Positions 36,405 to 61,554 of a DNA stretch of 64,000 nucleotides are shown one piece after another. The position numbers were made by a program, and so were the translations under genes. The first letter of the stretch is position 1; each line of letters begins with the position of its first letter. This stretch comes from Bugula neritina (lineage: Eukaryota > Animalia > Bryozoa). Below the pieces are notes generated by a model. It had not been told where the DNA came from. It saw only the letters and a list, made by a program, of their open reading frames with translations, and searched no databases. The stretch spans positions 3,563,538 to 3,627,537 of the forward strand of contig OZ037772.1 in assembly GCA_964035545.1 (NCBI GenBank), in the 5' to 3' direction.

Positions 36405-36780
36405 ATTTTATTATTATTACTTCTACTACTACTACTACTGCTACTACTACTACTGCTACTACTACTACTACTACTACTGCTACTACTACTACTACTACTG
36501 CTGCTACTGCTGCTGCTACTACTTCTACTACTGCTACTACTACTGCTACTGCTGCTGCTACTACTTCTACTACTGCTACTACTACTGCTACTACTACTAC
36601 TGCTACTACTACTTCTACTACTGCTACTACTACTACTACTGCTGCTACTACTGCTACTACTACTACTGCTACTGCTGCTGCTGCTACTACTTCTACTACT
36701 GCTACTACTACCAGTACTGCTGCTACTACTACTTTTACCACTACTGCCGCTACCACCGCCGCCGCCACCACCACTACTAA
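36405..36780. repeat. (CTA/CTG)n trinucleotide microsatellite
   Basis: Direct reading. It is the source of the poly-L, poly-Y and poly-V ORFs. Confidence 0.95.
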
Positions 36781-39700
36781 TATTGTTTCTACTACAAGTA
36801 CTGTAAATCTTACCAGCAGCAAGTTATATTGGAAACTGTTTGCTCATTTTATCATTGTATTAGTGCAATAACAAAATGTTTATATTTTAATATAGTCAAA
36901 CCTTTTAAAAAACTAGGCTGCTACTTATGAACTAAGAAGTTGTGCTACCCACCTTGATATGCACTCAGCTCCAACACCAAGCAGGTGGTTATGATGCTTC
37001 TCCACAATGGCCAGGCCATCCAGCTGTCCGATTGTATGCATCTACGTAAAAATTATTGGCATATGGTGCAAGAAATGATTAAAAACCAGATAGGTGTGCT
37101 AGAATTTATACAGCATAATATAGAGTAAGGTAAAAGAGAACAGACCGTCAAGTGGTACAGCATAGAAACAATTACTAGCTATTATATGCTTTATAGAAGT
37201 TGGCAAATTGTAGCCCACTAGATATGAACTTTGGTTAGCATTTTATTTTGGCTTTCAGCAACTGCTTTAATCAATAATCTTGGCAAAACCAATATGTTTA
37301 CAAATTAACACCTCCACTAGATAGGTATACAGGTCAAAATATTCCAATTGGTGACATACTAAAAGAAAATGTATATTTATTCATCTTTGAAAGATTGCTA
37401 ATAATTTATAAAACAGCGTCGAAATCAGTAAAGTAACAGCGCAAATAAGTTTATTTAACATCATTATAGGATTGCCTATTACTAGTTTCATGATTTCTAT
37501 TATTTTACTGGTTTTAAACATAATATAGGCTGAAAAAGCAATATTAGTTCTCTCACTTTTGCTAACTACATTGCTTGGAAGGCCATCATAATTAGATCAG
37601 ATCAAACAAATGTGTTGACAGGTAGACTGGAACAGGCCTAAAATTTGCAAGGTATAATTTAAATGTATCTGGCCTGAAATTGCTGAAACTGACAATACAA
37701 TAATATGAGAAACGAGCAGGGTTTTTTATTAAAGCTAGCAAAAATAATTCCTCTACATATAATTAACATACAGTTCATACATATAATATATTACTATGTC
37801 CAGGCAGCAGTGCTTGTTCTAGCCAAAAAAAAAACTGATTTAATGGCTGATTTTAATGGCCATCAAGAAATTTATGGCGCACAGTGGCATTGTCATATTT
37901 TTAATATTCAAAATTACAGTTCTAATCTATCAATCATTTTATCAATACTACTACACTATGATCTACTCCTGCTGCTACTGCTGCTGGTTCTACCACTGCT
38001 ACCATACTGCTGAGTAATGCAAGCTAAGTAATTTAAATTACAATTAAAAAAATTATTGGACTTTCTTTTCTATTACCTGTCCAGTTTAGCATTTCTTTCA
38101 TCATAGCTTGCCATAGTAACTTGAAAATTCACAGGGTTTGAGTTAGACCTATAGAATATACTTACAAGTAGAATGAACCCACAGTTCTGCAATATATCAT
38201 GAAAACATTCAAAATAAAACTATAGGAAAACCAAGTAAATGCTTCTAAGTATTAGCGAAAGTAAAGATGCTATGCAATCTATCCAACATGCAGCCAAATG
38301 TCTCAAAATAAGCATCATGCAGAGTTATAAATATAAAATGTTTCCGAATCAAGGCTAGCAACACATTGTTGTTGTGATAGCAAATTTTGCTTAATAAAGT
38401 AAGGAAACCAGCTTCCCTTGCATGACTCAATTTCTATTAAAGAAAAATTATACTCTCATATAATCGCGAATAATTCAATGCATGTATTTTAATTCAATTT
38501 CATAGTTATTTTTCAGTTTCTAGACATGCTGACTATTGAACCATATAGGCTACTTTAAACTAGTAAAAATACTGAGAGCAATATTAACAAAAAAAATGTT
38601 CACAAAATGTAAAAATACAACTAAAAAATTTTGCGACACCCATTTTAGTCAAAACCCCCCTTATGACTAAAATATGTGTCACGGACCGCGACACCAGGTG
38701 GCCACCCATTTTAGTCACACCCAGTTTTATTTAATAGTAAATCAATTTACTTATATAAAAATTATTACATTCACAGTGATACATTGATGGTCATAATATT
38801 TTATATATCAATATCATCATTATGATACAATTATCACTATTACTATTAGTGTTACTATATGATAACTTATCAATAAAACTTCATAAAGTTCATGAAAAAC
38901 ATTAAATATAACAATTTAATTAAAACTAAATCAATGCCAAAGGGCAAGGTAGAGTCAAAATTAAATAAGCTATAGGGTGTAGGCTATAAGTGTAAGTATA
39001 ATCATCACTATAAAACTAAGTGACTGATGAGTTGGTACTTGGTAGCATAAACATAAAATGAGCATCATCTCATCTCATCTCATCTAATTAATCTCACTCG
39101 GAGCGCTTTGGCTCCTTTATCGAGATGCAGTGGTGTATGAACAATTGTTTAAATTATCAGTAGTAAGGAAGAAAACCATTTTGTCTACGAGATAAGAATA
39201 TAGTTAATTATGCTTTGATTCAAAGCTCAATAGCTAGCTACTGCCAGGAGAGAAAAAAAAGAAAAAAATAAACAAACATAAACTAAAACACCATTACATA
39301 TATGATTTATGACCCTTTGGTTTCTATTTCTGATTTTAGCTTTACCTTGTCTTTTGGCATTGGTTATAGTATTAGTTTGAGTTACAACACTATCAGTTAC
39401 TATGACTATGAGTATGAGTGAGTAGCCTTGCCCGTAGAACTAGGAATAGGAGTAAATCACTAGAAGTAGAAGTGTGGGCATCGGGGTATGACTATGAGTA
39501 TAACTCATAGCCATAGTATGAGTATCTTACTGAAAGTGATACTCATAAACCTCAAGTGATAATCATAATGATACTTAGCATGACATGTAAGGTGTATAAT
39601 ACTCAGTCTCAGTTAATGAGTTATACAGAGTAGAATATCAAACTTTAAGTTTAACTGCTACTTTGAAGTAGGACTTAGACATCACCATTTATGGGTATGT

Positions 39701-42525
39701 CATGCCGTCATAGACTATAGACATAGTATAAGGTTCTAATACTATAAGTATAACTATTACTATTAGTATTACTATTAGTGTATTACTATTATAACTTATA
39801 AGTATAAGAATAACTATAAGTCAGCTATACTGATTACGCAGATTTGTGATTACTAATTTAAAATCACTCTAATCAGTAACTGTTATCACTATTAGTGAAT
39901 TATTCATCATTTTATGATTTTATCATGGTCACAGTGAAACTGATTGAGTAATACTTAGAGTTATAGCTATATTGGTAGTGATACTGCTACTGATAGACTT
40001 AGAGTTAGAGTGTGAGTCAGAGTGAGAGTCACTGAGCTGGAATATTATTGAGTTCGATGGTGAGAGTGATATTGTGGTGGCTCGTGGAGCTACCAGCAGC
40101 ACAATACGCAGGGTCGCGTAATTGACCCGGAACAATGACAGCCAATTAGCAACTTTAGTAGTTAGTAGCAGTAGTAAATTTCCCGCTGTTAGTCAGTCGA
40201 AGTTAGAGTGTTGAGTAGTCTACATGTGTGGAATTATTAAATGTATTTGTATCGTTTTTGTAATGTGTTCTTGTACTTAAAATATATAGTCGTTCACTCG
40301 ACTTATCCTGGTGAAGTTCTCTAGCAAGTAATTAGACTCTCTGGATTGCATATCAACCCTAATTCTGAAAATCATAACAATATTCATATTAATTATAAAT
40401 ATGGTTGTAACTAAGAGTATGAGCAAATGTGACATTATAAGTATTACCATTACTATTAGTGCATTCGTATCAGTATTACTATTAGTATTAGTACTACTAA
40501 TTATTAATCTATTTTCCAATAATAACCATGCATATGCCCTAGCTTATAAGTTTGAGTACGCCTATGGTATTCCAAATTGAAATTGGATCATTATGATTAA
40601 TTTAAATTTAACCAAACATATTTAGTTTGTTTACTGTCGTTCCATACACAAGTCGTTTCGTACACAAAATGAATAATTGATTAATCCACTAGATGACTAC
40701 TTCAATGGTACTAATTTACTTATTTATTGCTTTCCAGTATATATATTGAACACCTCCCATGTCTCTTATTGATCGATGTTTTATATTATTTTTTAATGTA
40801 TTATCTATTACTATTTTGATAAATGAGGTAATATATTTTTTTATTGAACACTTTTTGGTTTTATTTTGATCAGTGCCTCAGTGGTTTAAATTGTAATGTG
40901 CAAGTTGCTTGTGAGCAGTACTGTTTGGCTCATAGTCTCATACATCAAATAATGAATATGTATTTCAGTCAATTCATATTAATGTGTGTACGAAATGACC
41001 TGCACCTATTTATTTATATTAAATATTCTTATTTGATATTGTAGTTTCTTTTACAAACACAGAATTAGATAGCTTTTTAGTACTTGTAGTTTTGCTACTA
41101 CAACTATTGTCATTATTATAGTTGTAGTAGCAAAATTATTATTATTACTGTATTATTAATATTACTAAATATTATTGTTTTTAAATTTGTACTACTTTTA
41201 CTTACTCAGTTACTGAGTGAGTCAGCAACTATAATAATAACCCTTAAAGTATTATTTTCATTACTTAGATTTATACATATACAGCTAAAATGTGAAGCTG
41301 TACAGTATGATTAAGAATTGTTAGTATAGTAAATAAGTAATTCATTGTAGTCATATTCATACTTCAATGTGATACTAATGCTGATGGTACTATTTTTTCT
41401 AATACAATAAATATATGTAAATAAGTATAATCATTTACTATAGCCAAGACATCAAAGACTCACATTTTTAATAATGATGAATTGATTTAGATCATAATTA
41501 AGATCATCATGGTTTTAATTATTTTCATTACCATCATTATTTACATTGGTAATAATATTGCAATCTTCATTACTAGTTACGTCAATTATAATAACTGCAA
41601 AGTACACTTTTGATTGAGAACTGTGAAAATCATTAGTGATAACAAACTACCACTGTAAGTCTGTAAGTGCTTTAGTACTAGATGTACCACAAGTATCAAT
41701 GCTTTAGGTTTTTATGGTGTTAAATACTCATTTTCTTACAGTGATTGTTATTTTATTGGTACGTGTTCTGTTACTTGTGAGTATTAGTTACAATTCCAAA
41801 TGAATAAGCTATTTTAAGTAAATACTCTTATACGTGTGAATATTGATATGAATTATATGTTTCACATTTACAGTTACAGTTTTATTAGTATGATATACAT
41901 TTTATTAATAATAATGATCATAAAACATCATCATTAAAAGTGTAAAGTTTTACTGCACTTTTTGGGACCAGTTGCTGCTTCTGGTAACATAGGTATAAAG
42001 TTTTTTGCTCATTTACCCTAACACACTAAGGTTTGAGTTTTATCTTTATTGCAACATCCAAAAACCTTTGCCGACCTTTTTCTTACAATCAACTATGAAA
42101 CGTTGTGCGTCTATGCTTAGCTGATAAATAACTAATAATATTTGCTTGTTATATGGGGAAGAATTTTTTGCATAGTAATACCTCTCGTGTTTGTATTTTG
42201 ATTTTTCTAATGTCAATATATTTAAGAAATATTCTGGAAAGCATTTTTTGCCAGTTTGTTTCTTCTCTTTATTTCTTGTTCATTTTAACCATGCAATATC
42301 AGTTATTAACTCTATAAGATACACTGTTTTAATTATTCGTTGCACTGGTGTAGCATCTAGGATCGTGTTGATTTTAAGTGGGGTGCAGACTTTTTGAAAA
42401 TTATGGCTTTTGTTTTAAAACCTTTCTTATCCATACCACAAAGTTTTTTTGCTTGTTTACCGCAATGAGTCTGTACACAACTACTAACTATAACTAAAAG
42501 ATATCTGTTTGAAATATTATAGAAT

Positions 42526-45500
42526 ATGGCTAGTGAAAATACCTATTCTACGGCCTTATCACTACTCCAGTCATCACTTAAAAAAAGTATCGCAGAGGAT
42601 AAAGTTAAACATGATGCTGCAAAAAGATTGAAACTTGAAGAACGAAGAGAAAAATACCATGAAAAAAGTAGGTGTATCTTACACTATTTGATAAAATTCT
42701 ATGAGTTTGTTAGCTTTATTTAGCATCAATCTTTGTCTATGCTAAAGAGTCTCTTGCAGCTATATATATATATATATATAAGCTCCCATCTGTTTGTGGG
42801 TTGCATGTTCAAACAATTATCGTGTTTTATAATATCTTTTTATACAAATATGTCCTAAATTGATTTGGAATTTCTGGTTGCTTGACTATGCTTTCATTGG
42901 GCTCTGAAGTCCGTGGCATTTTGAAACAGCTATTTTAGCTGCCTACATTGTAATAACTGAGCTGAAAAAGTTTGAACTGAAATGAAAGCTAAGGTATATT
43001 TATTTCTGTTAATACTTTATAAATAAAGTGCAGCAAGAGTTTCTTAAAATTTTGCTGTATTTGATTCATTCAACATTATATGTAGATATTGCGTTTTTTT
43101 TTATTAGAATTATCACAAGCTGGTAACACAACGTCAAAAGAATACAGTGATAAGCTAACAAGGGTTGTCTCTAAGCACCTAACAGGTTAATTTTTCACCT
43201 TTTATGTAAAGTGAAACTTGTTTGCTGAATGCATGCAGTTGGTTTACTTTATTAGCTGGATGTTTGAAGCACCTTTTTGTAACGTTTATTTTAGATTTTG
43301 CGAATCAGCAAGTACACTCATTAGACAATAATGCTACCAGTTCCAATACAGTAGATGTGGAAAATGAAAACCAATTGAGTGCGTGTAAGTATGCACACTT
43401 AAGGTAAAATAGAATAGTTAGATGTGGTTTGTTTTTAAACTTGAAAATATGTTTCATGTTTCTTTGCCATCAACTCAACACAGAAAGTATTTGTAATTTG
43501 TAGTTGCCAATATAGCTATTTATATGAACACGAATCAAGTAATAATATTTGCAGTTCAACCCTTGTTTGGTACATATAACTTATTGATTTTAGCTTCAAT
43601 GTGCTGCTAGTATAAACAAACCATTTTCATTTGAATTTCCAAATAGATAAAATTGTTGACAAATTATAACATTTCATTTTGCTAGCTTTTGAGCAGTATA
43701 TGTTCTTATTTAATTTTCTCAGATGTTGAAAGATTGCTGGACCTTGTTGGACAGTACTGTTCTTCCCAGCCACAAAGAACACCTACATATATAGAGGCTA
43801 GCTTAGTTAAATGGGACAAAATTCGATCAATTCTTCATAAGAATACAATTACTGGCATGGAAGCTCGAAAACTCTCTCTTAGTATGTGCTTTCTATAGCG
43901 TCGATTTCAATTAACAGTCTTAACCGTCGTGATTGCCATGTTATAACTATATTTTCTATATTGCTGAATGTAAAAGGTTAGCATTTCTAGCCAAGAACTG
44001 ATTTTTGATTTTAATTTTAGGTGATCGGATTACTCTGCTTCCATCAACTTGCCAAGTCTGCAACCAGCCAATCATTGAGAGAGCTACTTATACCCTCAAG
44101 GTCATCACTAATGATGGTAAATTTTACAAGTTCTAAACTCTAATTTAAAAATATTTTCATTCATTCAGGTCATTGTTGCATTCTCCACCACTTTAGGTGA
44201 TGTGGAATTTTCGGGTTTTTTGCTAATTCACATTTTGACCACACATCTATTTTTTGCTTTACTTCCTGTTATTCTAAAGTAAACTTTAAAATGCATGCAT
44301 GTTTTCATTTTTCAGACTCTTTATATTTAGCTTTCAACATTTTACTATAATCTTTCGGTTTTAGGGCTCTCTGAAACAGCGATAAATGTACCTTATTGTG
44401 AGCTGTGCTCGTGGGCACCTGTTCAGCTGTGTGAAGATTTTCCTAAAATCGGGCTGTGGCCACTAACTCCTGAGGGAAAAGTATTTGTGGAATTCAGTTA
44501 CTTGTTGCATAATAGCATCTTGCAGCACCATTCCCCCTCTCTAAGCATGAAAAGCATGCTTTCTAGTCTAAAATTTATATCAGCATTGGATGGCAAGGTC
44601 AATATTCCTAATTTTTTGCTGCTTTTATTCAAATTTCTTCATTTATTATTTGTCCAACTTTAAAATCTAGTATTCATTTATACACTTATGCTGAATGTTT
44701 ACCTCTGCTAAAATGAATACTGAGTTTCAGTTAATATCACTGTTCTGATTACCCTTATATAGTTTTACTGAAAATCTTATTGATGCAGAAGCCTCCCTTC
44801 TAATAGTGAAAATTGACTAGCTATTTGATGCTCTTTCAAAATTTAATAGTTATGTTGACAGCATAAAATCAATAACTGGGAAAGGCAGCTGTTATACATA
44901 ATTTTGTGAATCTTTTTTCAATGCTTTGTAATAGTCATTTAATCTTAGGTTAGTTATTTAGTTGCTAAAGTTATAATTGAATATCATTATCTACAGATGG
45001 TTATCATTTTCTTTGCTTTTTATTTTTAAATTGGCTGGTTAAGTTATCTAAGGGTCAAGAATTTGACGAATAGCTTTAACAATGTATTGCAACTTAGTAA
45101 ATTTTCAATTTGGCCAAATTTAGTTTCTGGCTGAAAATTAAGTAGGTAGCCTATAATAGCAACTTTTGTTTATTCTTACAGCAAAAGTTCTCTATGTCCC
45201 AGGACACCTTCAACTGCTGTTTCCTGGAATGGAAAAAGGCAGAATCTTTTTTCTTCCATCATGTTGCTCAAACCTTTAATTGTCCCTGCTGCGGAGCTTC
45301 ACCACACGCAGTTCATATTGATGGCAACATGAAGCTTTATAAATATAAAGCAGCTGGAAGGTAAGTTTCTCTTGGGTAGCACAGTTTTTGTTCTGTCTCA
45401 TTTATGTGCATGTAATATTGAATAGGTAGTTGTGTGCTTTACTTATTATTATTATGATTGTTTTATTTTTAGAGTAACAGTTGAAGAGGCAGTGCCGTCG

Positions 45501-48500
45501 CATCTTTTCTTAGATGACGGTGAAGTGAAAAATGCAGTTGAAAAGATTTGTGTTTCGAAAAATGTCAGATAAAGTTTCAAAATAGTATACTAATATGGAT
45601 ACGCTTTCAAATATGCTGGTTTTACTATTTGGTGAAATTTACCAGTTTGATGTTCATAGCACTTATTCTACCTTTTTTATTTGTACCTTTTTAATCTAAG
45701 TAAATAAGTGAGCTATTATGTTATCTGATTTTTAGAAGTACTCAGTTGATGGCCACTGTGGAGAGACTGCGTGGAAAGCAGCAAAGACGTCTTCCGGCAG
45801 TTTCTCAAAAAAAAGTGTGACTGGCTGTATGATGGCCACTTGCCGTCATGCTCTAGTGCTCAAGGCACTGGACATGGATAGGGGGGAAGTTTTCGCTTAC
45901 CCATATATAATGCAGGTGAGTTAATTAATGCTCTCCTAACCTTTATTCATGTGTTTTCAAAATGTGTTGTGACTTTTTGTAAAATTTAACTCTGATCAAA
46001 GTACATTTAAAAATTTTACACGTCAAAGCTTCATTTTTTTAATTATATGTTTGAACAATTTTAGAAACAGTTTTCTGGCGCGAAGTTCATAGCTACTGAC
46101 GTCATGTGCCAGTACTACCCCTGGCTGTCCAAAATGGACGCGCAGCGTGCATCCTCTCAAAAATATTTTTTGAGTGTGATGCACGCTAAAGCCCACACTT
46201 GGACATGTCAGGTACTATGCTTCAGTAAATCTTTTAGTTTTCAGTAGCATAAGTAGAAGCAATGCATTTACATGTAAATGCCAAATTTTTTAGCCTTTGA
46301 ATCTGATGAGTATTTTGCCTTTAGCTGCCTCCATGCAAATTTTGGTTTAAAATATAGAAGCAAACTTTTCATGTTAACTATTTTTTACATGATTGGTTTC
46401 AAGTTGTTTAGGCTTAAATTGAAACATCCCCAGGCCGCAGCTGCAATGTTGTTTCTATTTAAAGACTAGGTGGAGTGGCAGGGTGAAAAAGGGAGTAGGA
46501 CTGAGCACTGGCGAGACCACGGAGCAAACAAACAGCTACATGTCTCGGTGTGGTTTGATAACGAGACATATGACTGCTAATGGTACCCAATTTATATTCT
46601 CTTTGAAACATATACTTGTTAACTACGTGCTGTTTGAATGTATATTAAGTTCATTTGATATATAACCTATTGAAACTGTTTCAAAATGCATTGTTTAAGG
46701 TGTACAAGTACCATTATGCCTTTTTAATGCTTTAAAGTATTGTATTGGTTTTTCTAGGTCGTCGTCAGCAGCTCGAGCATGCTGCTGGCTTCTGGAATTT
46801 CAGAAAAATAAAGAAGATGCCGGAAATGTTGGCAAAAAAGATAAAGCAGGTGTTGTATACAGTTATGGAAAACTTATTTTATTAAAAAAAACCTTGTGTT
46901 CAATTAAGTTTAGTCAACATCTAAAACTAACATTTCTGAAGTATTATAGCTTGTATATATTATTATTTATGCAATCAAACATTTAAAAGTGTCTTATTTA
47001 TATATTTAAAGGGTTTTTCATTCGGAATTTCATTGTAATATTGGAGTAAATAATAGCTTAGCATCATTCTTCCATTTAGTTGCATTATATTATTTTTATT
47101 TTACTGCAGTGGTTGCTAAATCGATTATGGTAATTTATTTAGTATTCTTCATTTTTTAGCTATTTTTCAGACTGCAGCTGTTGATTTTGACCAAAACTAA
47201 AAAATTGTCAATAAATAATCAAGTTTCTTTTTAATCCTTTTCAATTTTCGTGGATAATGTTTTTTTACCTAATTTGGATTTTCGGATGATCATGAAAAAC
47301 CGTCTGAAAATCCATAAGTAGCTAAAGCCTGCAGAATGTATGCATTAACTTATTATTATGGTTTCGTTCTATGCATTAACATTGAAGAAAAGTACATTGG
47401 CATAATGCATGCTTAGTAGTAGTTATTGAAACAAATTGAATTATCGAGTTGAATATTTAAATGTGATGATATTTATGTTTCTTAAATGACTAATTATTAT
47501 TAGATTGAAATGGAACTGCCGAAACGGCATGCCACTATGGTAGAGCTGAAGAAATCTGAAATTCCAGAGGCCAGCAGCATAGAAGAGGTGATGGAGAGGA
47601 TTTGCTCCTCCTCGCCAGGTAAAGCTTTCTTATAGAGTTGGTTAGTTGTTAGTCAGCAAATTGTTAGGTAATCTAATTTGCACACAAATTTGACAGATTA
47701 AAACCCTTTAGATTGCGTATCTAATAGAATATATGTTTATCTATACTGTTCTATCAAGTGGATCAGATTTTCTCCATCATACGTTATGAAAATCAACAAA
47801 TCTTCTTTGTTTATATTTATAATAGCTACTATAGGGATGTTTAAGCAGACCTAATTTGTTTAGCTTCATAAATGTTTGCTTTATCAAATTCAGTTATATT
47901 TCAAGAATACCTCTGCTTAAGATACAGCCTGAAAACTTAAATTTTTTCCAGAGATTGCGGTTTTGTAATCCACAATTTTTTCGAAAAATCAATTGTTTGG
48001 AATTTGAGATCAAATTTTAAATTAAATGTGTTGTGTTGTGGAATGTGTTGTGCTCCTGCCACATTGTTAGACAAGTAAGATTAAATATACATATAATTAA
48101 GATTGTAGAATGTATGACTGTAACGTATTGGAGCTAACAGGTAACTGACATTAAAAATAAATGTAGATGAAAAATTACAGAATATTAGTATGGCAAAAAA
48201 CTGTATATAATGAGTTTAGGCAAATAGACATCAGAATAAGAGTTAACCCAGTATGTAAAACGTGGTATGTCATAAGATGTCTATGTGGTGTAATGATAAG
48301 GCTAGTTCAATACATAGCAGAATAAACGCTAAACTGTATATTTCTATTATTAGATTTGACTGCAGATCAAAGAAAATTGGAAGATTTAGCTTGCACTATA
48401 CAGCGGTTTGATGCAAACATTCTCAAGTTAGCAGGTTGGCAAACTTGTAACTTTTCTAATTTTTAGTTCGGTGTTGTGATAATTTGTTATGGAGGCAACA

Positions 48501-49445
48501 TGTGTATATATCTCATTTTATTTTTTTTACCAAAATAAAAAATAGCATCTAACTGGGAAGTTTTCATCTGAGACCCATCCTATTTTCTGTAGCGAGAAAT
48601 GTTGTCCGTCACATTACTGTACCTATTTTTAGTCAAATTTGCTTTTTTTGCGGTTGCTCAAAACTTTAAATGTTTAGTGGCAACTATCATTCATATGTTT
48701 CATAATTTAGACTCATCAAAGGGGCGTGACAGGTTGCGGAGCAAACGACGTGCGACATATTTGAAGCTTCAAAAGGCTGTTGATGAGTATGTGCAAAATC
48801 ACCCGGACCTGTCTCGTACAGACTTTGACCAAGCCACCTCCATGATCTTTCCATGGACAGGCTCGGAAATCAAGCTCTCTGTATCCCCCAATTTACTGAA
48901 GCTGTTCGATGCATACCATCTCTACAATAGAACAGTGGAAGAATTGGATATATTAGGTGAAGAGCGCGTAAAATTGCTTGAATATGCAGGTATAGTAGTT
49001 GTATATTTCTATTTTCCAAAATCAGTTGTTTTAATTTTTTGCAGTCTGTAATTTCATGTGTAACTCAATTTACGATTCTATCTATTCTTGTGACAAAACT
49101 GTCTTTTTATGTCATCACTATGTCAGTTTTCTGTCAATGTTGCCACCATATATTTCTTGTAGCACGCATGGCAGCATCCTTAAGTGATGGTAACCATAAT
49201 GATGACACCATCTCCACCCAATTTAAACAAGCCTTTCTCAAGTCTTGTTATGCCAACTTCTCTGGTGCTGATCAAGAGGTTGTATCTAAATGTTGGCAAA
49301 TCTTTAGCTTAGATTGTAAAGTTTTTTTTATATTTGTGTATGTTGAAGGATCTCTGACTAAATGTAAATGAAAGTTAATATAATATATAAGAATATTTAA
49401 ATTTTGTTTTACAACAAATTTTATGTGTATATGTGCTGAATTGAT

Positions 49446-49499
<54 letters not shown>

Positions 49500-49814
49500 G
49501 TATATATATGTATATATATGTATATGTTTATACATATATATATATTTAATAGTGCATAAGTACCGCATTCCAGGGATCCTTTAAAAGATAAACTAATAAC
49601 ACATTGCACTATTTGAAACTGTTGTGTGTGTTTTTTAATCTTCAGTAGAAATATAACTATAATATTTTTGGTACCATAATCTATTTCAAAACTTGTATAG
49701 TGGCTAACGTGGGGTGATTAAAAAATACTTCATTTTGTTTTCCAGTGTGAAGAAATTATAGATGATGATGATGACTTGCAGCCGATTTATTCTGACTCAT
49801 CTGACGAAGACTAA
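42526..49814 (+). CDS. KDZ transposase with N-terminal CxC-type cysteine cluster, 17 exons, ~754 aa
   Basis: Exons 42526-42667, 43108-43185, 43295-43384, 43723-43881, 44021-44116, 44365-44597, 45182-45360, 45473-45563, 45736-45915, 46065-46211, 46465-46582, 46758-46849, 47504-47618, 48354-48434, 48711-48989, 49163-49278 and 49746-49814 splice in phase with no stop. Motifs: CQVC..CELC..GLWPLTP, FNCPCC..VHIDGNMKL, TGCMMATCRH..MDRGE, TDVMCQY, MHAKAH.WTCQ, GVGLSTGETTEQTNSYMSR, FWN.RK, FPW, NRTVEE, and an acidic tail. Confidence 0.9.
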
Positions 49815-50471
49815 AGCTTTTTTCTTGAAACCTTTTTTGATAGTTTTTGGATATATTTTTCAAGCCACTATCTATCTGAGTGAGGATATATTTTAACTAG
49901 CTCTCTTCAATAATAATTTTATGTCTAGCTTAAAAATACCTATGATTGTGCTTGCTTGCACACTGTATATGTTCGAGTTTCTTCCAGGTTGTTTTTAGTC
50001 ACATGATGTACTGTCGTTGCTAATGAAACTTGCTTATGAGTAACCAATTATCCTTTTTCTACAATACTTATTGCTGCATTTTAGTAGTTGTTTTTATATT
50101 AAAATAATTTTGAAAATTGTAAAGCTAGTTTTTACTGATGTGTGTGTGTGACTGGCAGAATACACATAATCTGTTATCAAACATGTATTAAATGTTATTA
50201 GCGATTCCAAAGATGAGAAATTGCATACAGTTTTCTAGTTTGTTCTGCCCTGTAATTGTAATCTAAAAAGGAACTTTTTACTCTTATAATATTTTTGTAA
50301 CCATAATATGCTCTAATTCAACATTTGAAGTAATGTTTAACACATCCTATGTTGGCTAGAATTGATTTGCAAGGTAACTTTCACCTTTGTCTTGAAAGAA
50401 TATCAAACTGTTTGGCATACAATTATTTGTTTATTCACAATATATATATATATAATATGAAATATTTAGGT

Positions 50472-53400
50472 TCAGGTTCTTTTGCTGCATCCTTGTCCCT
50501 AAAATACAAGAAATAATAATAATCAACAAGGAATATGCAACTTCAACCAGTTGATATCTTTAAATCACAAATGAACAGTTACCGGTTTACTTAGTTAAGC
50601 TGCAGCATAGTGTAACTAAATGCTACTTTAATTTTAAAAGTGTCTAGTCAACTATTTGATAATGTGAACAGCTGAAGTAGTACACTCACCATAAACTGTT
50701 TGTAAAACACTGTGTGACGCACATTTGTAATTGGCTCCCAGGTTGGAGTCCTAGAATATAAACATCAACAACTTTTTCAAACTGGAAGACCAAAAGCACC
50801 CACCAAACTTCTGAAGTTGAAGAAAAAAAAAATCGGTCTAGATCTGTGACAAGTTACAAAGACATTCCATTGTACCTCCCTCTGTAATTTAAATTTTTGT
50901 CTAACATTTTATGTTATGACATTGCTTACATGCAAGTTCTAATTTCTAGCAAAAAGTAAAAAAAAATGCAGTTTATAAAAAAACATGACCTAATTACACA
51001 ATGCTTCCAAATAAACAGTCTTCTAGTCAAATGAATTTAACCACTAATTTTCAATCTTACGATAACAAATGGCATACTCAAATAAATTGGGTAAGCTATT
51101 TTACATTTTTATACCGAGCTCTATCGTCTGTGTATGCATGCATGTGTTATACTTTGCTAGTGGATCATTATGAAAGTTCAATGCAGAATTATTCATACTC
51201 CATGATCATTCTTGCTGGTCTCAATTCAACTTACCTGTACCCCTTCCATTTAACAAGTGCTTCCCTTCCTTTAACGTTAGTAATATTTTCAATCACCCAA
51301 AGTTTTTTGGTACCTCCTTCAACAAGAAACACATAAAACATTATATTTATATGATGATTTTATAACAGCTTTTTAAACATGGGTAAATAATGCGATTTAT
51401 AAATATGTGACATTTGCAAAGAGTTTCTGAACATTTTGTTAGACAAATTAGTTCATGAAATCTTTTATACGTGTCATGCATATACTCAAAAAGCTGTGCA
51501 AACAATTACTTCCAACTTTAATTTTCTTGATTTACAAAACCTTGTATTATATAGCATTGAGCTAATATTACAATAAATATAAAACTGATGCATCAACCAC
51601 AAATTGTAAAGTATTATAACTACAATATAAATATATGCAAGTATGTAATAAGCTTTGTCTAATTTGGTTACAATTTGTGAGACAATAATTATTTTGATTT
51701 TAAATAAAGTTTGAGGATAATTATCAAAGACGTACGTTTTGTTTTTTGTGAACTCTTCTTTCTAGTAGTGGCTGAGGGCACACTGGTGGAGACAAAGCTG
51801 GTTGAAGGCACACTGGTTGAGGGCACACTGGTTGAGAGACCTATGGTTGAGGGCACACTGGTTGAGAGACCTATGGTTGAGGGCACACTGGTTGAGAGAT
51901 CTATGGTTGAGGGCACACTGGTTGAGAGACCTATGGTTGAGGGCACACTGGTTGAGGGAACACTGGTTGAGGGCACACTGGTTGAGGAAACACTGGTTGA
52001 GGGCACACTGGTTGAGGGAGCACTGGCCGAGGAAACACTGGCTGAAGGAAGACAGGTTGAAAGCACACTGGTGGAGACAAAGCTGGTTGAAGGCACACTG
52101 GTTGAGGGCACACTGGTTGAGAGACCTATGGTTGAGGGCACACTGGTTGAGAGATCTATGGTTGAGGGCACACTGGTTGAGAGACCTATGGTTGAGGGCA
52201 CACTGGTTGAGAGATCTATGGTTGAGGGCACACTGGTTGAGGAAACACTGGTTGAGGGCACACTGGTTGAGGGCACACTGGTTGAGGGAGCACTGGTTGA
52301 GGGAGCACTGGTTGAGGGAACACTGGCCGAGGAAACACTGGTTGAGGGAACTATGGTAACTGGTTTATCATCTTTGTCTAGTTTATTATAGCTTTCCATG
52401 ACTGTCATCTTGTTTGGATCGTAAACTTCCTTTACTAAATACAATAAAGTAAAATTACATTCAAACTCTGCACAAATTTTTTTTAAAAAGTAATAGAAAA
52501 GTAGTTTTACAACTTTTATGGTCTATATATGATAATCAAATATTTGCATGTTTTATATCTGAAACTACATAAAGAAATGTAAATATCTTATGTAAAATGT
52601 ATTTATTGGCCATAGGTTTAGTGAAAAATACGAGTAGAAAGCTTGAGTTGCCACCGTCAATAAATTATAAATAAACATACAAAGTGCTCTATATTACATC
52701 TAGCTCTAAAAGCATTTATGCATCTTACTTGAACTTAAAAGCACTGCTGTCATAGCTTTAGTAAGTTGTCCTAAGAATTCAGATGACACTCCACTGCTTA
52801 TCACTGTGACCTTCTTATTTGAGTTAGGCTTTATCATAAAAGTAACTGTACCAAAGCCAGCTCCAAGAGCGAATGATGACTAAAATATAAAATAGTTTAA
52901 ATTATTTCAACAATAATATGGACAAAAGAACAGCTATGCACTTAGTAATTAATTCTATTTGTTATTATTATAAGTAAAATAACTTATACCGCATCAAATT
53001 ATTGTTTACAGAAAGCAATTTTTACCAAAAATGGTAAATAAGCTACTGGCACAGCGTTTTAGTTATGCATGCATAGTAAAATACCTTTCTCATTTTTTGC
53101 TTAAACTGATATTATATTTAAGCATTACAATATTGCAGAAGTTAAAAGATTTTATTTGATGGCGTCACACATGTATGCAGATCAACTTTGTTTTCATTTT
53201 CCTATAATTTGCTATTATTATAGCATTCTAGAGAACAAAATCGCTTACCATGTTACACATCCTCTGCCTTGTGTAGCCGTTACCTTTTTTATGTTGAGCA
53301 CCATACTCAAACTGTCTAGCCAATGTCTCCTGTTTAGTTTGTAGTGTTAATGATCTCATAGAGCTCCCTAAATATATACACATATATATCCAATTATACA

Positions 53401-53618
53401 TTACTTAAGATGCTTTAAATTAAACTTTTTAAGACATGTATGCAGATATAGCTTCATATGTAAAAAGAACCTGGGTATAATTGTATACCAGACAAAATGA
53501 CTTATCTAAATGCATATACTTTTCATTTGACCTGTGAACGCTGCAGTAAAATCTTTGAAGTCACAACTTTTATAGTAAAATATTTCGTGTGTGAGTGAGT
53601 GTGTGAGTGAGTGAGTGA

Positions 53619-53694
<76 letters not shown>

Positions 53695-55525
53695 CACCAA
53701 TGAAAGCAAAGTAGAACAATTGGAAGCTCTATTACCATAAGTAATAATGTACTCACCACAGTTGGAGCAATTGACTGCATTTATTGGTATAACGTGTTTG
53801 CAGCTGGGGCATTCTCTTTTGGTAACTAAAAAACCAAGATAACAATAAACAAGTTTTAACTGCAGTATGGCCTCATGAAATTTCTGGTGAAATTGGTGCT
53901 AACTATATATAATAACTTACCAGATGATAAATTATACTAAATCCTTTTTAAAGACCTATAAATGACTATAGGATTATGATATAAGATGGTTTTACTTGAA
54001 AATTTCATGTCTATTAATAGCTAGAGTTATAATTTTAAGTATAATATTGCAAAAAAGTTTAATTGCATGCAAGAAACATCGTTTATTTAAAGAGATCATT
54101 TATCTATAATAAACGCTTGCATAATAGCTATTATAGCATTTCTTTTCATTATATAGCACATTGAAAAGTTAAAGTGCTATACCATAATTGTCAGTGAGGA
54201 TTTGAGAGCACAAAAATACTTAGGCTATTTCAAAATTATGTTTTTAATTTCTATTGCAATTAACAAGAAACAGCAAGGAAGTGTATATGAATTATATTTC
54301 ATTCTTGAGGATTTATATAAGAATGCCCAACTATTTTATATAAGTAAATCTACTATCTCATAATTATTTTTAAATTTAGAGCCATAGATGAAATTAAACT
54401 CATATGACACGTAAAACAAGAAACTGTACTGGTTTTGTGGTTAATGCTAAAGTAATTTGTTTTAGCATAACAAATTGTAGACATTCTATACAATCTAGAT
54501 TATGATGCCTGTGCTCACATAAAACGAAAGATTGCTAAACTAATTATGTATAGCAATCCTGTTTACTTACAGAATAGTATATATAATTGACCACAAACAA
54601 CTCAAGACCTATGATCTGGAAAACTATATGCAAACAAAGAAAAAACCTCAGCCCATAACTATTATATTATATTCCATATGTTGTTGTAATCATGCAACTA
54701 TACAACTATTTCAATAGATGATACTTGGTCTACTATATATATGTTTTTTGTATATAAAATATTGTCTTAGCTTAAATTATGTTTTATTGAGAATTTTTTG
54801 CTACTTTAAATAAATTGGAAAAATAAATGAAAAAATTAGCTACAAAAATAAAAGCTATATAGCCAAGTTTTAAAGTATGCTGGATAAAATAGCATTGATT
54901 ACCTAATTAAATTATGAGAACTCAAATTACTTATATAAGTACGAGCCGATTCGATTGCACTTGCAGTTTGCCCTGCGCGTCTGGTATAACATGGCACAAG
55001 TATAATAATGGCACTATGGTAATTTAAGGGCACAAATAGAAAAGTGAGAAAGAATGCACACTGATGTCAAAATTGTTAAACCCCAAACTCAAACCTTCAT
55101 TTCCAAACCTAAACCCCATCCCACCCCAAACCATAACATTGAAAATGTGCCATTATTTGTACCTACTTTGCCATTTGTGCCTTTATTATCAGTATTATCA
55201 TTACCTGTGCCATTTTTACCTGTGTCATTTTTACTGCAAACTGTAAATAGTAGGTATTTGTTGATTGAAGCTCAAAAAGAATTTACTACACTTGAAAATA
55301 ATTATTATGATATAAGCAGCATACATATATACTTGGCTTGTCTAGCATAAATTAATTTAAATTAATCAATCATAATATATAATAATCAAGTTATAAAATA
55401 TCCTTTATTTTATTATACTTACTGCATTTGCTGCATTTTGCAGGAGGCCTTAGGCTGGGTGGTTGCATAAAAGCTTCTGCACACAAATTGCAATGTGCAA
55501 TTTTAATTTTTGTTGAGCTATCCAT
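50472..55525 (-). CDS. Double zinc ribbon + Pro/Ser/Thr-repeat linker + C-terminal chromodomain protein, 8 coding exons, ~436 aa
   Basis: Exons 55525-55423, 53825-53757, 53367-53249, 52879-52729, 52434-51736, 51316-51235, 50750-50690 and 50498-50472 splice in phase. The N-terminus reads CNLC..CSKC..CPSC..CSNC. The C-terminus reads WVIENITNVKGREALVKWKGYRTPTWEPITNV. Confidence 0.85.
51770..52350 (-). repeat. Coding 15-bp tandem repeat encoding (PSTSV)-like pentapeptides, ~38 copies
   Basis: GGTTGAGGGCACACT units on the + strand, inside the 699-bp exon. Confidence 0.9.
53588..53692. repeat. (GTGA)n/(GT)n intronic microsatellite
   Basis: Direct reading. Confidence 0.9.
54985..55235. mobile_element. 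Degenerate MITE-like foldback; a related half-copy lies at ~57205-57295
   Basis: ATGGCAC repeats on the left are mirrored by GTGCCAT repeats on the right, around a CCTAAACCC-type core. Confidence 0.45.
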
Positions 55526-56181
55526 GCGTTTTACTGTGAAATCTAAAACAATATAAATTTGCAATGAACATAGCGTTATATAAAGGTTGCAGGAATACAG
55601 ACTGGCATAATTTGGAATAGAAAAACTAAATAATACTTATATAATATAAGAATAATCATACTGATTATGAATAGATAAAAAGAACCATGATGCTTTAAAA
55701 CTGGTAATTATGTGCAAAATCATACAAAAACATACAACAGTAATATTATTACATAATGTAACCATGCATGATGTATCAAAATAAAGAGTTATTTTTAATT
55801 TCTATAAAACCTCACGCGGTCATACTAATAACTAATAGTAATATGGTAAACAAAAACATAATAAATTGATGATAAATTATTTAAATATCGTGACTAGTTA
55901 TGATTGATTCAAAATATTTAAAATAAAGAATATACTTCAAAAAATTAAATAATTTCCTGATAAATTCTTAGTACCTCAGTATTGAATGCTTCAAGTGTTT
56001 CTAATCAATTACGTATAAGCTATTCCGTTGCTGCTGATCTGGCAAATTTAGCCTAACGCAACATTGAGCCATCTCATTGGTTCAAGCATACAGCAGTGGT
56101 TTAGCTTTCTATTAGCTATAACAAACAAAAAGAGAATAAATTGTTTGCGGGTATATAATAACAAGACTTATGTGAAATATT

Positions 56182-56252
56182 TGCCACTACTGGGAATCGA
56201 ACCCGGGTCCTCAGGCTTGCAAGCAAGTGCGCTACCATTACACCACGGAGGC
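56182..56252 (-). pseudogene. tRNA-derived pseudogene or SINE head (71 nt)
   Basis: GCCTCCGTGGTGTAATGGTAGCGCAC...GGGTTCGATTCCC...GGCA has intact A and B boxes and a T-arm, but the anticodon and acceptor stems pair poorly. Confidence 0.7.
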
Positions 56253-59200
56253 TACTGGGTTAACACAACACTACAACTTATAACAATTAAAGTTGTTACA
56301 GGTCTAGAAAATTAACTATAACAATAATTTTGGAAAAGTTGTAAAGTCAGCAAAATCAAATTAAACTCTTTAAAAATGTTTCAAACAAACATAATGGATG
56401 CAAGAAAAAAAAGCCAACTTTAAATTGAAAGCAAAACAAAATACTTTTCAACAAAATTTGAAGAAATGGGAAGAAAGTATCAAGTGTCCATATATATCTG
56501 TCATTCGTGCCTACTTTCTTATTTACTGCATTTCTACTTGTGCTACACCTGGTTTTATAACAATTCTTATTAGCACAGAACCACGATATCAGTAAACATT
56601 AGCAAGCCTATAAGTTACTCATCCAATTTAATTAAGTGATGGACCTGTTTTCGAGTGCAAAGAACAAAGTGAAAAACGTAATTTGTTTTAGCACATGATG
56701 GTCAAAGTGTTATCTTTTTCAGTATTGTGGGTTTGAGTGTGCGATCAAGTTATTTCACAACGCGTATTCTAAATCAACTTCGCAAGCGTAGTTCAGATTA
56801 CAATATATTTATACAACAATACACAATCTAAAAACTACATCTATTCAAACACATTAACAACTACCCAGCACAGTGATTAAAGTTTGCATGTCTACTTGAT
56901 CATAACTGTTACGCGGGAAGTCACTGTTGCTAATTATAGTTCATGATTCATATTGGCGGGTTTCTGTCTCGAATCATCTTCTTAACACACTTAGTGACCC
57001 CGTCCTGCACTTGGAAGGGAATTAATATTTCCCCCTTCTTCGTTATGACAGTAGCTCCACGAGCCACCACAAAAGCTCTCGGTTACAATCCATTTTTTTT
57101 TTCATTTGTAAAAATGGCTCCAGTAAAAGTGGCACATGTAATAAGAACCACCTGCATCGTATATAACTGATATAATATATACAATACAAAATACATATAC
57201 AAAACCATTATTACCTGTGCCATTATTGCCTGTGTCATGTTTAGCTGTGCCATTTTTACCTTTATCATTTTTACCTCTTCCATTTTTACCTGCATGGGCA
57301 ATTTTGGTTTCATCCTATATTGCAGATATAAGAGGCTTATCCTATGGTTGAAGCTAGACTAAATTTCCCACTTGGATTCTTCTCACCTAAAGGCTTCCAA
57401 AGTTAGACTCTGCACATCAACTGGCGTATCGATTGCTAAATAGCTAATATGCCTATAATATAGCTATAATTATAGCTATATTAGCTAATAAATTATTTGG
57501 AATAATAGCCTACTTTTCAAGGATTTGTGTGAGGCAAAAAACCGTAATACATTATTATTAGACATTATTTTTGATGAATATTTATAAAAAAAACAACAAG
57601 ATGTAGAGAATTTCAAAATTAATAAGTTGATGCAGATCAAAAAAAATTTATGTTTCAAATAGCAAACAATTGATCCAAGTTTATTTGAATATAGATTTAT
57701 TTCATTAATATTCAAACGAATTGTGCATAAAATATATGTTGCACTGAAATTAATTAATAATTAGCATCTAACTGGGATGACGCTGCCAATTTTACCTAAA
57801 GTTGTAAGAAACTATAACAATGCATGCACACAATGTTGAAGGTTCTTGACCTTCATGATTCATAGAGTGTTTACATCAATACTAATATAATAATAATATG
57901 ACAGAAGAAAGTAAGGAATCATATAACCATGCAGACATATAGATGCAAAATGTAGAATTTAGTCTACCAAACAAACTAAATTTGAGGTCAACAATAAAAA
58001 GACCATAAAACTACTGCATTTTACCACATTATATCCAATCTAAAAAGATCTACAAATAAAATGATCTTTAAAAAGCTCCATAGTAAACTTAGAACGGCAT
58101 TAGCACCTGTTTCTAATTAAAGTGTGTGGCTATTTGAATCAAATTAGTGTCTGGAAAAAGTATTTACAGCTGTAATTATAGCATAACTCATCATGGTGGG
58201 AAAAGTGTTCAATCTTTAATTGCAATCACTATATCTATAAATGCAAGTGTATCCTCCTGCCAGATAGTCTGTTAGCTAGCAAGCCTGTGACTTATAGTAA
58301 TGTAGACCCCTATATTATGTGCTCATCACTGAAGTGTGAAGTGATGCACAGTGTTCACTACTTAAAAAGAAGTATACCATTTCTAGTGTATAAATCCACA
58401 ATTTATATAAAATCTAAAAGTCATTGCTTTTTTATTCAGATATCATGTTTTCCTGCTAAGATATTTTACTGGTACCCCAAAAATCAATTTTTGAGGCAAA
58501 ATTAGCCAAAAATGTGCAGTTTTTTCTATAACTTTGCAAAAGAATGAAAAAATACCAAAAAAGCTGCACTGAGAAAAAATAAGATTCACACCATAGTTTT
58601 TAAATTTTGATTCTAGTAGCCTTCAATTAAATAAGATTGTTTTTACTGGTACTGAATTTTTACACAGTTACAATGCAAACCTCTGCAGGGCAGTTGCAGC
58701 TAAAAAGTTACCTGTAACTATCCTGTGCAGACAGGTATTTCAAAGACATTTAATCAGGACTGGCCATATAGAGACAAGACTTTTTTGAAAGTGTAACTGA
58801 GATCTCATTTTTATTGACTGTATTGTGAAAGATAAGTAGTTGAAGAATCCCTGACACACTTTACTTATGCAGTACTGAAATATTACTATGTATGTTAGTT
58901 TTCATTTACATACTGTTTTAAGGTTAGATGTCTAAACAATTTTGTTTTATAATGAATTTTGTGCGAGTATGTACTGAAATGATTTGGGATTTGTAATCGC
59001 CTTGACCTTTGACCTTTGAATGCTTGTTAGATGCTGCACTGCACAGAGATGGCTTGAAGGTTTGAACTTTCAATTTTCAGTCAAATGAAATACACAAAAT
59101 AAATACTACACTTCACTCACTAGTCAGCACTTAGTCCAGCAACTAAGGGTTATATGTTCTAATACGAAACCAGATATTAACAGAATTGTTCAAGGCAAAC

Positions 59201-59549
59201 AGTACTCACTGTGTACTCACAAGTGTTTCACTGATGGTTGTAAAATATAACTATACTGGTATGAGTACAGACTCTTATCACTGGCGCATCTTGTTTAAAT
59301 TTGCATGTACAATCATGAATATATTATACTTTGTATGAATATATATGTATAATTTTTTATGCACAAACATAAATCCATATATAATTATTGATTATTAAAG
59401 TAATAAAAATGAAATGTTTCTTGTTTACCTATTTTAATTAAATGCATATATTATACACACATACACACATAAATAATATATATCTATTCAAATACGTTAT
59501 GATTTTAATAAACATGCAAAGCCTAGCCCTCGCTTATAATTACAATACA

Positions 59550-59674
59550 TATGGCCTGCGGATGTTTAATGAATCTTGAAAATTTATTTTAAAAACAAAA
59601 AAAAATGTTGTGGCCCCCAGCTCAAGCTAAAACTTGCAGACTGGCCCTCGGTTTGAAAAGGTTGGACACCCCTG
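59550..59674. mobile_element. End fragment of a non-autonomous hAT element
   Basis: TGGCCC subterminal repeats followed by AAAAGGTTGGACACCCCTG. A similar isolated end, GGTTGGGAACCACTG, lies at ~33856-33870. Confidence 0.55.
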
Positions 59675-61554
59675 CTGTAAATAAATCAAAGCCCCCTGGG
59701 GGGGGGGGATTAGAGATTTAGAATGCCGGGTTTAGGTTGAGGGGTTTAAGGGCTGGTGGCTTGAGTTTGGACTTTGAGTTAAATTAATGTTAATTTTTCC
59801 AAACCACCATTTAAAACCACACACACGCACACACGCACACAAGTTAGAAAATATGTATATGTTTTTTTCAACTATGTTTTAAACGGAATACAAACATGTA
59901 AACCACAAAACAGTGATTGTCTTCTTTCAATGCCATATTTTTGATCACACTAAGAAAGATGGTGGTAATGCAACTCCTAAAAGCATGTTGCATTATGTCG
60001 CTCCTCTGTCGGCAAGTATACCATTTGTATTAATGTATGAAGTCTTCAACATATATTTCAACTTATTTTTGCAAGTAACTCATGACAGTAAACTATATGC
60101 TTCTTTTTCTTCATGTGTGTGTGCGTGTGAGTGTGTGTAAAAATGCAGCACTCATAATAGTTGTTATTTTCTGAACAGCTTACAATAGCTACAGTTATAT
60201 GTAATTGCATAGGAGTGTTGCAAGTGTTTGCTAAAAGATGGTATGTAAAACATGCTGACGAATTTGTTGTGGAGAAATTTAAATAATTACTTAGCATTTA
60301 GCAATAAAATTGTTCATGTACAAATCAGAAACACCAAGTTGTATGCATATATTTTAAATAGTATGCATGAATTTGCAAAAAAAATGTAACTTAAACTATA
60401 CCAAAGTTGTGTTTCATTAAGTTAGGAGATATTTATCAACAAAGCAAAAAATTAGAACTTTATATACTTTTACTATGAGTATATGTTTTATATATGTGCT
60501 CATTTTGTATATACTGCAAAATATGTTATATACAATGTTAAACCAAAAGAATCAGAACTTTATAGTGTAATACAGGCACATCTACAATGTTAACAAATAT
60601 AACATTAAAAACAAGAAACAAAATTGTTCGTCTCTTCTACTTGACTTTTTACAAGCAAAAAATTATTATTGCTGCAAACTAAATTTAAATGTTGAGGTTC
60701 GTAAAGTTATATGTTTGTTAAATTATTTCACATTGTTTATATTCTACAAATAATTTCTACATATTTTCTAAACGCAATATCTTTTTTCGTCTACTACATG
60801 CAGCTCATTATATGCATATGTATATTATACAACGCAGCATAAAATTTTATAATACTTAGCAAAAAATGCTGAAAAATATTAAAATTTTACAAGATGGTAT
60901 TATATTATGGTGGCAATAAAATTGTAATAGACTATTATTTAATGAGAAGACAATTATGTTTTTATAATGAAGATTGATAAATTTATAATATGAGCTGAAA
61001 TTGAGTGAGAAGACAATTATGCTTTCAAAATACTTACAAGACTAAATTCTTATCCAATAGCTACAGTAATTAATATCCTTTGTTTGAAACAAAGTCTAAA
61101 AGGAGCGGATTTAAATAAAAAATTTAGACCTGCATTTGTTAAAACTTTTCAATCAAAACTATTACATTATATTATTTTTTCTCATAACTCCTAGCTCCTA
61201 AAACCTTTCGCATAAAAAAATTAATTTAGAATGTAAAATACTGCTAGAAATTGCCATGTTAATGTCAACCCTAACTGTATCCACCACTTGTTATAGTTGT
61301 TACGATCGTTACTTAACCAATGAAGTTGAACTGGTTGTACCTTCAGCCAATCAATGACTTATTTCAATTGCGCCTCGTTAGGCGAGGGTCGTTGACGAAA
61401 TCTATATAATATAATACAAATCCCATTACCACTGATTGACCCGAAGTTCTCTACGACTTCTATAGTGGTATAGGATAATAGATATACTGAAATATACACA
61501 GGTTAAAGCTAGAAGATCAAAATATAACAAAAAGGTAGCATTGTAATTAATTGG

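Follow-up and report, generated by a model that had tools for sequence, protein, structure and literature searches.

What is the mobile unit in this region of the genome of the bryozoan Bugula neritina, and does the second gene which it carries serve its movement? The stretch under analysis (64,000 nucleotides, contig C8:3563538-3627537 of a 216-Mb, 321-contig assembly; hereafter the window) holds a predicted KDZ transposase gene and, convergent with it, a second gene, the partner, with a putative chromodomain. An earlier note, made from the letters alone, had read the two as a 17-kb two-component transposon, bounded by a perfect 22-bp inverted repeat and equipped with a chromatin-reading helper. 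Our results suggest a different scenario, in which positions 35357-61489 probably hold a 26-kb cut-and-paste KDZ transposon of the Zisupton branch, present in five near-identical copies, and the partner would be an accessory cargo.

To find the borders of the unit, the window was compared with the other four copies, taken in 10-kb pieces; the five copies together make up what we call subfamily A. They are 98-99% identical from about 35354 to 61490 in the window, and at base resolution their flanks become unrelated from exactly 35357 outward and after 61489. The following features define the ends.

35357-61489, forward strand: complete subfamily A element of 26,133 bp, running from 5'-CAGTGCATCAC to GATATACTG-3'
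35349-35356, no strand: left 8-bp target-site duplication (TSD) AAATATAC, with the identical octamer at 61490-61497
61490-61497, no strand: right 8-bp TSD AAATATAC, matching the left octamer
35378-35475, forward strand: 20-nt subterminal direct repeats CGACTGTCAGGGTCGATCCT (35378-35397 and 35456-35475), with a relative, GGGTCAATC, near the right end

For three other copies, an octamer was predicted from the left flank and then sought at the right end by a degenerate pattern search, and in all three it was found abutting the right end, each time as a perfect 8 bp (AGTTTTAC, AATTTGAA and GACTGGAG). Four copies therefore carry four different perfect duplications, of the length reported for Zisuptons (PMC12730594), and because such octamers flank 35357 and 61489 in the window as well as the ends of the three other copies, it is the 26,133-bp element that makes 8-bp TSDs. 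The termini themselves are minimal, reading CAGT(G/A)...(T/C)ACTG with a terminal inverted repeat (TIR) of 4-5 nt, while a subterminal GGGTC(G/A)ATC motif is common to both ends; the subterminal repeats are putative transposase-binding sites. The copies differ from each other by 0.3-0.55% substitutions and sit on four different chromosome-scale contigs, so the element has moved very recently, as a single unit, to at least four contigs. The view of a young, possibly autonomous KDZ element is thus supported, with five copies at this low divergence and an intact-looking multi-exon transposase gene.

As for the 22-nt inverted repeat TTGTGGTGGCTCGTGGAGCTAC, it is real: it lies at 40072-40093 with its reverse complement at 57051-57072, the match is perfect, none is expected by chance, and no further match is seen at up to 3 mismatches. 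However, it does not enclose the mobile unit. When the genome was searched with the 330 bp inside each arm, five near-identical loci matched both ends and hundreds matched only one arm, many of them forming direct pairs with a spacing of about 7.2 kb. Copies with different flanks had been expected at the 22-mers, and they do exist, though at 35357 and 61489 instead, since the copies stay homologous for another 4.7 kb and 4.4 kb past the two arms. Outside either arm the five copies read the same, so the repeated unit does not end at the 22-mer. Each arm is in fact the 5' end of a solo long terminal repeat (LTR), as follows.

40073-40379, forward strand: solo LTR at the left arm of the 22-mer, 307 bp, TGTGG...ATAACA, with TSD ATAT at 40069-40072 and 40380-40383
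56708-57071, reverse strand: solo LTR of a second subfamily at the right arm, 364 bp, with TSD CTTT (reverse strand) at 57072-57075 and 56704-56707

Both have TG..CA ends and have only their first 21 nt in common, the 22nd matching base being a coincidence of the two target duplications. Genome-wide, the upstream copies of the left-type LTR are followed by a conserved tract that begins with TGG and resembles a primer-binding site (PBS), the downstream copies are preceded by a conserved purine-rich tract GGTGGGGGCGG resembling a polypurine tract (PPT), and insertions elsewhere make 4-bp duplications. The marks of LTR retrotransposons are accordingly all found here, namely TG..CA ends, short TSDs, direct LTR pairs, and PBS-like and PPT-like tracts; a Pfam search for reverse-transcriptase or integrase domains in the 1.5 kb of internal region adjoining the 3' LTR gave no match. 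Moreover, the B relatives described below are collinear across the left insertion site, which makes the left LTR a simple insertion in A. Considering the TG..CA ends, the separate 4-bp TSDs, and the PBS-like and PPT-like tracts of the family, the apparent TIR is an accidental juxtaposition of two solo LTRs from related retrotransposon subfamilies. The two inserted into the element in opposite orientations, and did so before its amplification. For annotation this is a caution, as two nested solo LTRs in opposite orientation mimic a perfect TIR. It was also observed that each solo LTR lies upstream of, and in sense orientation to, one of the convergent genes, at a distance of 2.15 kb from the KDZ start codon and 1.18 kb from that of the partner, and donation of promoters to these genes by the LTRs is a possible candidate role.

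Two other readings of the repeated unit are to be weighed at this point. A 17-kb two-gene transposon with its TIR at 40072 and 57072 would account for a perfect 22-mer that is unexpected by chance and brackets both genes; it is nevertheless very improbable and already refuted, given that all five copies continue with the same sequence beyond the arms as far as 35357 and 61489, that the arms belong to two LTRs which have their own TSDs (ATAT and CTTT) and are alike only over the terminal 21 nt, and that no 8-bp TSD flanks the 22-mers. The five copies might instead be segmental duplications, as a unit of 26-32 kb with 98-100% identity could suggest, but we give this hardly any probability at all: it is refuted by the four different perfect 8-bp TSDs, and the ends are sharp and identical between unrelated flanks, on four chromosome-scale contigs, with about 26 further elements having common ends. 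We therefore continue with the reading of a transposon that extends from 35357 to 61489.

Together with the 8-bp TSDs, the following gene places this transposon in the Zisupton branch of the KDZ class.

42526-49814, forward strand: gene of a KDZ/Zisupton transposase, 14 or more coding exons, modelled protein of about 658-705 aa

By chaining exons through canonical GT-AG sites only, an uninterrupted frame is obtained from the ATG at 42526 to the stop ending at 49814, with 14 to 19 exons depending on whether micro-exons are allowed, a range that includes the 17 exons proposed before. Pfam KDZ (PF18758) matches three collinear exons, 45736-45915, 46065-46211 and 46465-46582, over profile positions 55-106, 119-165 and 165-205, with 30.5, 22.7 and 21.1 bits, the first alone exceeding the gathering score of 26.6. 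Upstream of these, CxC3 (PF18804) matches the exon 44365-44597 (E 2.3e-5, 24.6 bits, profile 43-110 of 113); this is a match of the exon alone and just below the gathering score of 26.6, yet the nearest named homologues are annotated CxC3, and we take it as the N-terminal cysteine cluster of the protein. All of the four motifs by which the KDZ assignment had been made are present in the modelled protein, with DGNMKL at residue 255, CRH at 321, HAKAH at 385 and GVGLSTGETTE at 404. A library-wide phmmer search with the CRH exon returned 135 proteins, and the named homologues, which come from fish (Merluccius, Gadus, Dissostichus and Astyanax), the jellyfish Sanderia and Priapulus and are annotated CxC3/KDZ, align in order to four core exons with 40-51% identity. 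In two other fully read copies, the KDZ exons have 1 substitution in 2088 and 3 in 2115 nt, as against 0.31-0.49% outside the exons, and no nonsense change is found across the three copies. The transposase gene thus looks intact, and the element may be autonomous.

To place subfamily A among its relatives, the whole genome was probed with 400 bp from both termini and the paired ends were counted, which gave about 30 elements of 17-32 kb. Besides the five copies of subfamily A (26.1-32.5 kb), there are about 18 of subfamily B (17.0-20.0 kb) and about 8 of subfamily C (17.1-20.1 kb). The comparison of A with B and C, which rests on coordinates and identities from genome searches, is laid out in the features below.

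35357-42472, forward strand: left arm common to the B/C relatives, 80-100% identity (mostly 92-96%), ending 55 bp before the KDZ start codon
59840-61489, forward strand: right arm common to the B relatives, the last 1.65 kb, 92-93% identity
C4:21047912-21063691 and C4:12450705-12452047: relics of A-type KDZ sequence, 91% over window 48044-50309 and 78-83% over the DGNMKL exon
C5:3307951-3340418: A copy on contig C5, 32.5 kb

The ends of the approximately 26 B and C relatives are 92-100% identical to those of A; within this family of about 30 elements with common ends, A is the large member that bears the genes. From 42470 through the KDZ core, A and B/C are alike only in exon patches of 67-77% identity, and the change is abrupt, identity falling from 93-94% to 68% at about 42470, 55 bp upstream of the KDZ start codon. 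Further inward, the genome searches found no match in B or C to the 13-kb stretch from about 46.6 kb to 59.84 kb. The drop at 42470 looks like either a recombination breakpoint or the edge of an end homogenisation, and two origins of the mosaic may be considered accordingly: a foreign core could have recombined between B/C-type ends, for example through template switching in gap repair, or the ends could have been kept matched to the one working transposase. The B copies seem to be about 53 nt short within the CRH exon, and beyond the five copies only the two degraded relics on contig C4 carry A-type KDZ sequence. A KDZ protein made by A would bind the termini and the subterminal repeats, mobilising its own element together with the shorter relatives. 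The copy on contig C5 has a 4.8-kb insertion in intron 7 of the partner (window about 50560) and another of about 1.16 kb near window 56292-56302.

The partner gene lies on the opposite strand in the stretch without B/C counterpart, and its features are given below.

55525-50472, reverse strand: partner gene, 8 exons, 437 aa, convergent with the KDZ gene
55525-55423, 53825-53757, 53367-53249, 52879-52729, 52434-51736, 51316-51235, 50750-50690 and 50498-50472, reverse strand: partner exons 1 to 8
51736-52434, reverse strand: exon 5, tandem VPSTS units rich in Ser, Thr and Pro, with the basic stretch RKKSSQKTKR at their end
50690-51316, reverse strand: putative chromodomain over exons 6 and 7 with a phase-2 intron between them, aromatic W, W and Y present
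C3:18359342-18359568, C3:18510184-18510410 (= C298:111176-111402) and C3:21050277-21050638: chromodomain paralogues, 52-70% amino-acid identity

Its stop codon at 50474-50472 is 658 bp from the KDZ stop ending at 49814, in agreement with the convergent arrangement and the distance of about 660 bp previously described. The 8-exon model was made by reading splice sites by eye and by a constrained run, and its seven introns are all GT-AG with near-consensus donors and compatible phases; exon 3 is its least certain piece. Unconstrained ab initio chaining produced implausible micro-exons and missed the model. In the three fully read copies, none of the 8 exons interrupts the frame. In exon 5, whose length is 699, 609 and 444 nt in three copies, the frame is kept throughout, but every frame of the repeat is open, so that exon 5 is weak evidence of coding. 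The uninterrupted spliced frames which had been described for both genes therefore stand, as predictions from GT-AG models. Support from RNA was sought by comparing the stretch 50300-55900 (5,601 letters) with a run labelled 'metagenomic RNA-Seq' (X1, RNA-like, with 7% of the words) and with one DNA-like run; no splice joints were seen in either and only repeats were covered. As a separate observation, a short-unit minisatellite at about 55000-55350 has a very high k-mer depth in a run X2, with many variant joints, and partial matches genome-wide.

As to what the partner may encode, the spliced model is predicted to give two zinc ribbons followed by a Ser/Thr-rich linker, with a chromodomain at the C-terminus. 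Four CxxC pairs, forming the two ribbons, are visible in exons 1 and 2, where DZR (PF12773) scores 24.2 bits (E 3.7e-5) on the unspliced frame of exon 2 and 14.7 bits on spliced exons 1-2, with a gathering score of 27.3. For spliced exons 6-7, Chromo (PF00385) scores 22 bits (E = 1.6e-4), with a gathering score of 25.1. The Pfam profiles that had been named for checking thus confirmed KDZ on its three exons, while CxC3, Chromo and DZR stayed below their thresholds. All 46 of the PDB sequence matches of the partner are chromodomains (the best being CDYL2, at 1.4e-3), and W, W and Y stand at the cage positions as judged by eye. A protein search of the genome found, beyond the five A copies, three loci with a chromodomain split over two exons, 52-70% identical to that of the partner and with the intron at the same position as between partner exons 6 and 7. 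This shared position supports the exon structure of the partner and points to a paralogous gene family. No sequence relation of the partner chromodomain to the LTR elements of the locus was found. The three paralogues on contig C3 lie outside any listed KDZ element, and they are a possible source gene family.

Is the partner then a helper, as had been supposed from two-gene elements of other superfamilies? In this genome the partner region is confined to subfamily A, where each of the five copies has it. The best KDZ homologues are on contigs of only 1.2-1.4 kb, and linkage was looked at instead in three annotated loci, where no partner homologue was found within 10 kb of the KDZ genes of Priapulus, Dissostichus and Merluccius. 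The proposed linkage of the two genes holds within the A lineage but fails in the approximately 26 B/C elements, as compared at DNA level, and in the three other animal loci, which argues against an obligatory second component and for a lineage-specific cargo. The helper reading is accordingly not supported, the second gene not being kept across related elements or genomes. From these comparisons the partner looks like a lineage-specific cargo rather than a proven helper, and it would be accessory to the element instead of essential.

Several points weigh against this picture of a Zisupton-branch element with a chromatin-related cargo, and they are gathered here. The B/C relatives amplified to about 26 copies without a partner detectable by DNA-level search. 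The partner exons have 4 differences in 493 nt, which is not below the non-coding rate; when the window copy is set beside three other readable copies, the 4 sites comprise 1 silent change and 3 base changes in 2 codons that alter the protein, one being L, V or I among copies and the other N versus K inside the chromodomain. In the copy on contig C5, a 28-bp deletion (window 55514-55541) removes the partner ATG. To these are added the lack of splice joints in X1 and the sub-threshold scores of both Chromo and DZR. Moreover, the flanks of the A copies, when searched at five ends for satellite or tandem arrays, showed only microsatellites and short tandem repeats, and hence nothing that points to heterochromatin targeting. 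The TIR of only 4-5 nt also differs from published Zisuptons, which are described as having TIRs. Lastly, the idea that A alone would be autonomous is drawn from the low identity of the KDZ core to that of B/C (67-77%) and from a CRH exon which in the B copies seems to lack about 53 nt.

Some of these points would be met by taking the partner as a passenger, that is, as all or some exons of a host gene which the A lineage captured, perhaps when its mosaic core was recombined, and which has been drifting since then with no role in transposition. Its restriction to the A lineage, in a stretch that B and C do not have, fits this well, as do the paralogues with the same intron position at three loci outside listed KDZ elements, the lack of a substitution deficit, and the start codon lost in one copy. 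Chromatin-related cargo has, however, been kept repeatedly by fungal KDZ elements (PMC12730594), and the copies are too alike (about 0.5%) for a test of selection to have power. Furthermore, chromodomain identity to the closest paralogues is no more than 52-70%, implying that the capture is not recent, and yet the frame survives through 8 exons in three copies. The passenger explanation is thus possible but somewhat doubtful. A more radical view is that the partner is not a gene, and is made up of chance open frames and chance splice sites; the X1 run that covered repeats only, the unconstrained chain-finder that missed the model, the two sub-threshold domains and the repeat exon open in all frames speak in its favour. 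It is quite improbable all the same, considering that seven GT-AG introns with near-consensus donors would have to fall in compatible phases, that both the CxxC...CxxC ribbons and the chromodomain emerge only after splicing, and that the chromodomains matched in PDB and the intron position common to the paralogues would have to be accidental. The reading as an accessory cargo is the one we retain.

The Zisupton superfamily, a member of the KDZ class, was first described in fish and is also found in other animals, fungi and algae; KDZ and Zisupton elements are among the least studied DNA transposons, and we know of no animal member that has been shown to be active, nor, in the literature searched, of one with a gene for a chromatin reader. 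Our element agrees with Zisuptons in having a CxC3 cluster and a KDZ domain with the four motifs, a multi-exon gene, 8-bp TSDs, and nearest named proteins from fish, jellyfish and priapulid, while it differs in its size of 26 kb, far above the described members, in a TIR of 4-5 nt and in the presence of a second gene. In fish and nematodes Zisuptons are multi-exonic, with transposases of 1,100-1,400 aa (PMC9297572), whereas the modelled Bugula transposase has about 660-705 aa. In fungi, extra genes including TET/JBP chromatin enzymes are carried by KDZ elements (PMC12730594), and Cryptococcus KDZ1-3 and KDZx1 have extra ORFs (open reading frames) of unknown function, one of these elements being without TIRs (bioRxiv 10.1101/2024.08.15.608186). 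The Bugula element resembles the fungal Kyakuja, Dileera and Zisupton elements and the Cryptococcus ones in being large (6-11 kb in those) with extra ORFs beside the transposase; among those, KDZx1 and Kyakuja have no clear TIRs, and in the TET-bearing families the carried enzymes target chromatin marks, which has been proposed to aid escape from silencing. On the other hand, the cargo here is a putative reader of histone marks where theirs is an enzyme that demethylates DNA, the element lives in an animal, and the partner is limited to one lineage of five copies. Multi-gene and very large KDZ elements are therefore already known in fungi; the novelty lies in finding together an animal host, a length of 26 kb, TIRs that are nearly absent, and a cargo gene for a separate protein that putatively reads chromatin. 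In a full-text search of the literature, no paper connected Zisupton or KDZ with a chromodomain gene, and the co-mentions, two in number, were incidental.

Outside the KDZ class, two kinds of systems invite comparison. PIF/Harbinger with its Myb-like protein, MuDR with MURB and CACTA with TnpA likewise pair a transposase with a small protein that has a nucleic-acid- or chromatin-binding domain, and the second gene of Harbinger is needed for transposition; in those superfamilies, however, the second gene is conserved family-wide, while the Bugula partner is absent from the closest relatives and the tested animal loci. Chromoviruses (Ty3/gypsy) and Polinton/Maverick elements also encode a chromodomain, but as the C-terminus of their integrase, whereas here it would be a separate small protein of a cut-and-paste element. 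The chromoviral chromodomain tethers integration to heterochromatin and is the model for a targeting idea. The most likely role of the partner would be that of a putative nuclear reader of methylated histone tails, biasing the landing site or the packaging of the element. A further-reaching proposal, which we regard as rather unlikely, is that the chromodomain protein of the master copy reads histone methylation and steers the master and the approximately 26 non-autonomous relatives to repressed chromatin, or shields them there. If true, chromoviral integrase targeting would have a counterpart among cut-and-paste elements, and the TET/JBP cargo known from fungal KDZ elements would have a parallel in an animal. 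In any case such a very young family, with five gene-bearing copies of 26-32 kb and about 26 shorter relatives with matching ends, is a natural system in which to test how a KDZ protein recognises ends with almost no inverted repeat, and whether a chromatin-touching cargo aids the survival of a giant element.

There remain some minor features of the window. Within the element, the right arm holds a nested repeat, listed here.

58264-59680, no strand: dispersed repeat, about 1.42 kb long, with 15 or more copies elsewhere in the genome, 89-94% identity

In the left arm, long trinucleotide microsatellites of TAT/TAC type at 36220-36870 leave all frames open and create spurious ORFs of 150-190 aa. 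Outside the element, 58 bp beyond the right TSD, a 500-aa ORF starts on the reverse strand (61555-63057); it has reverse-transcriptase-like motifs, FDIVEFYPSI and YRDDG, and may belong to a Penelope-like retroelement.

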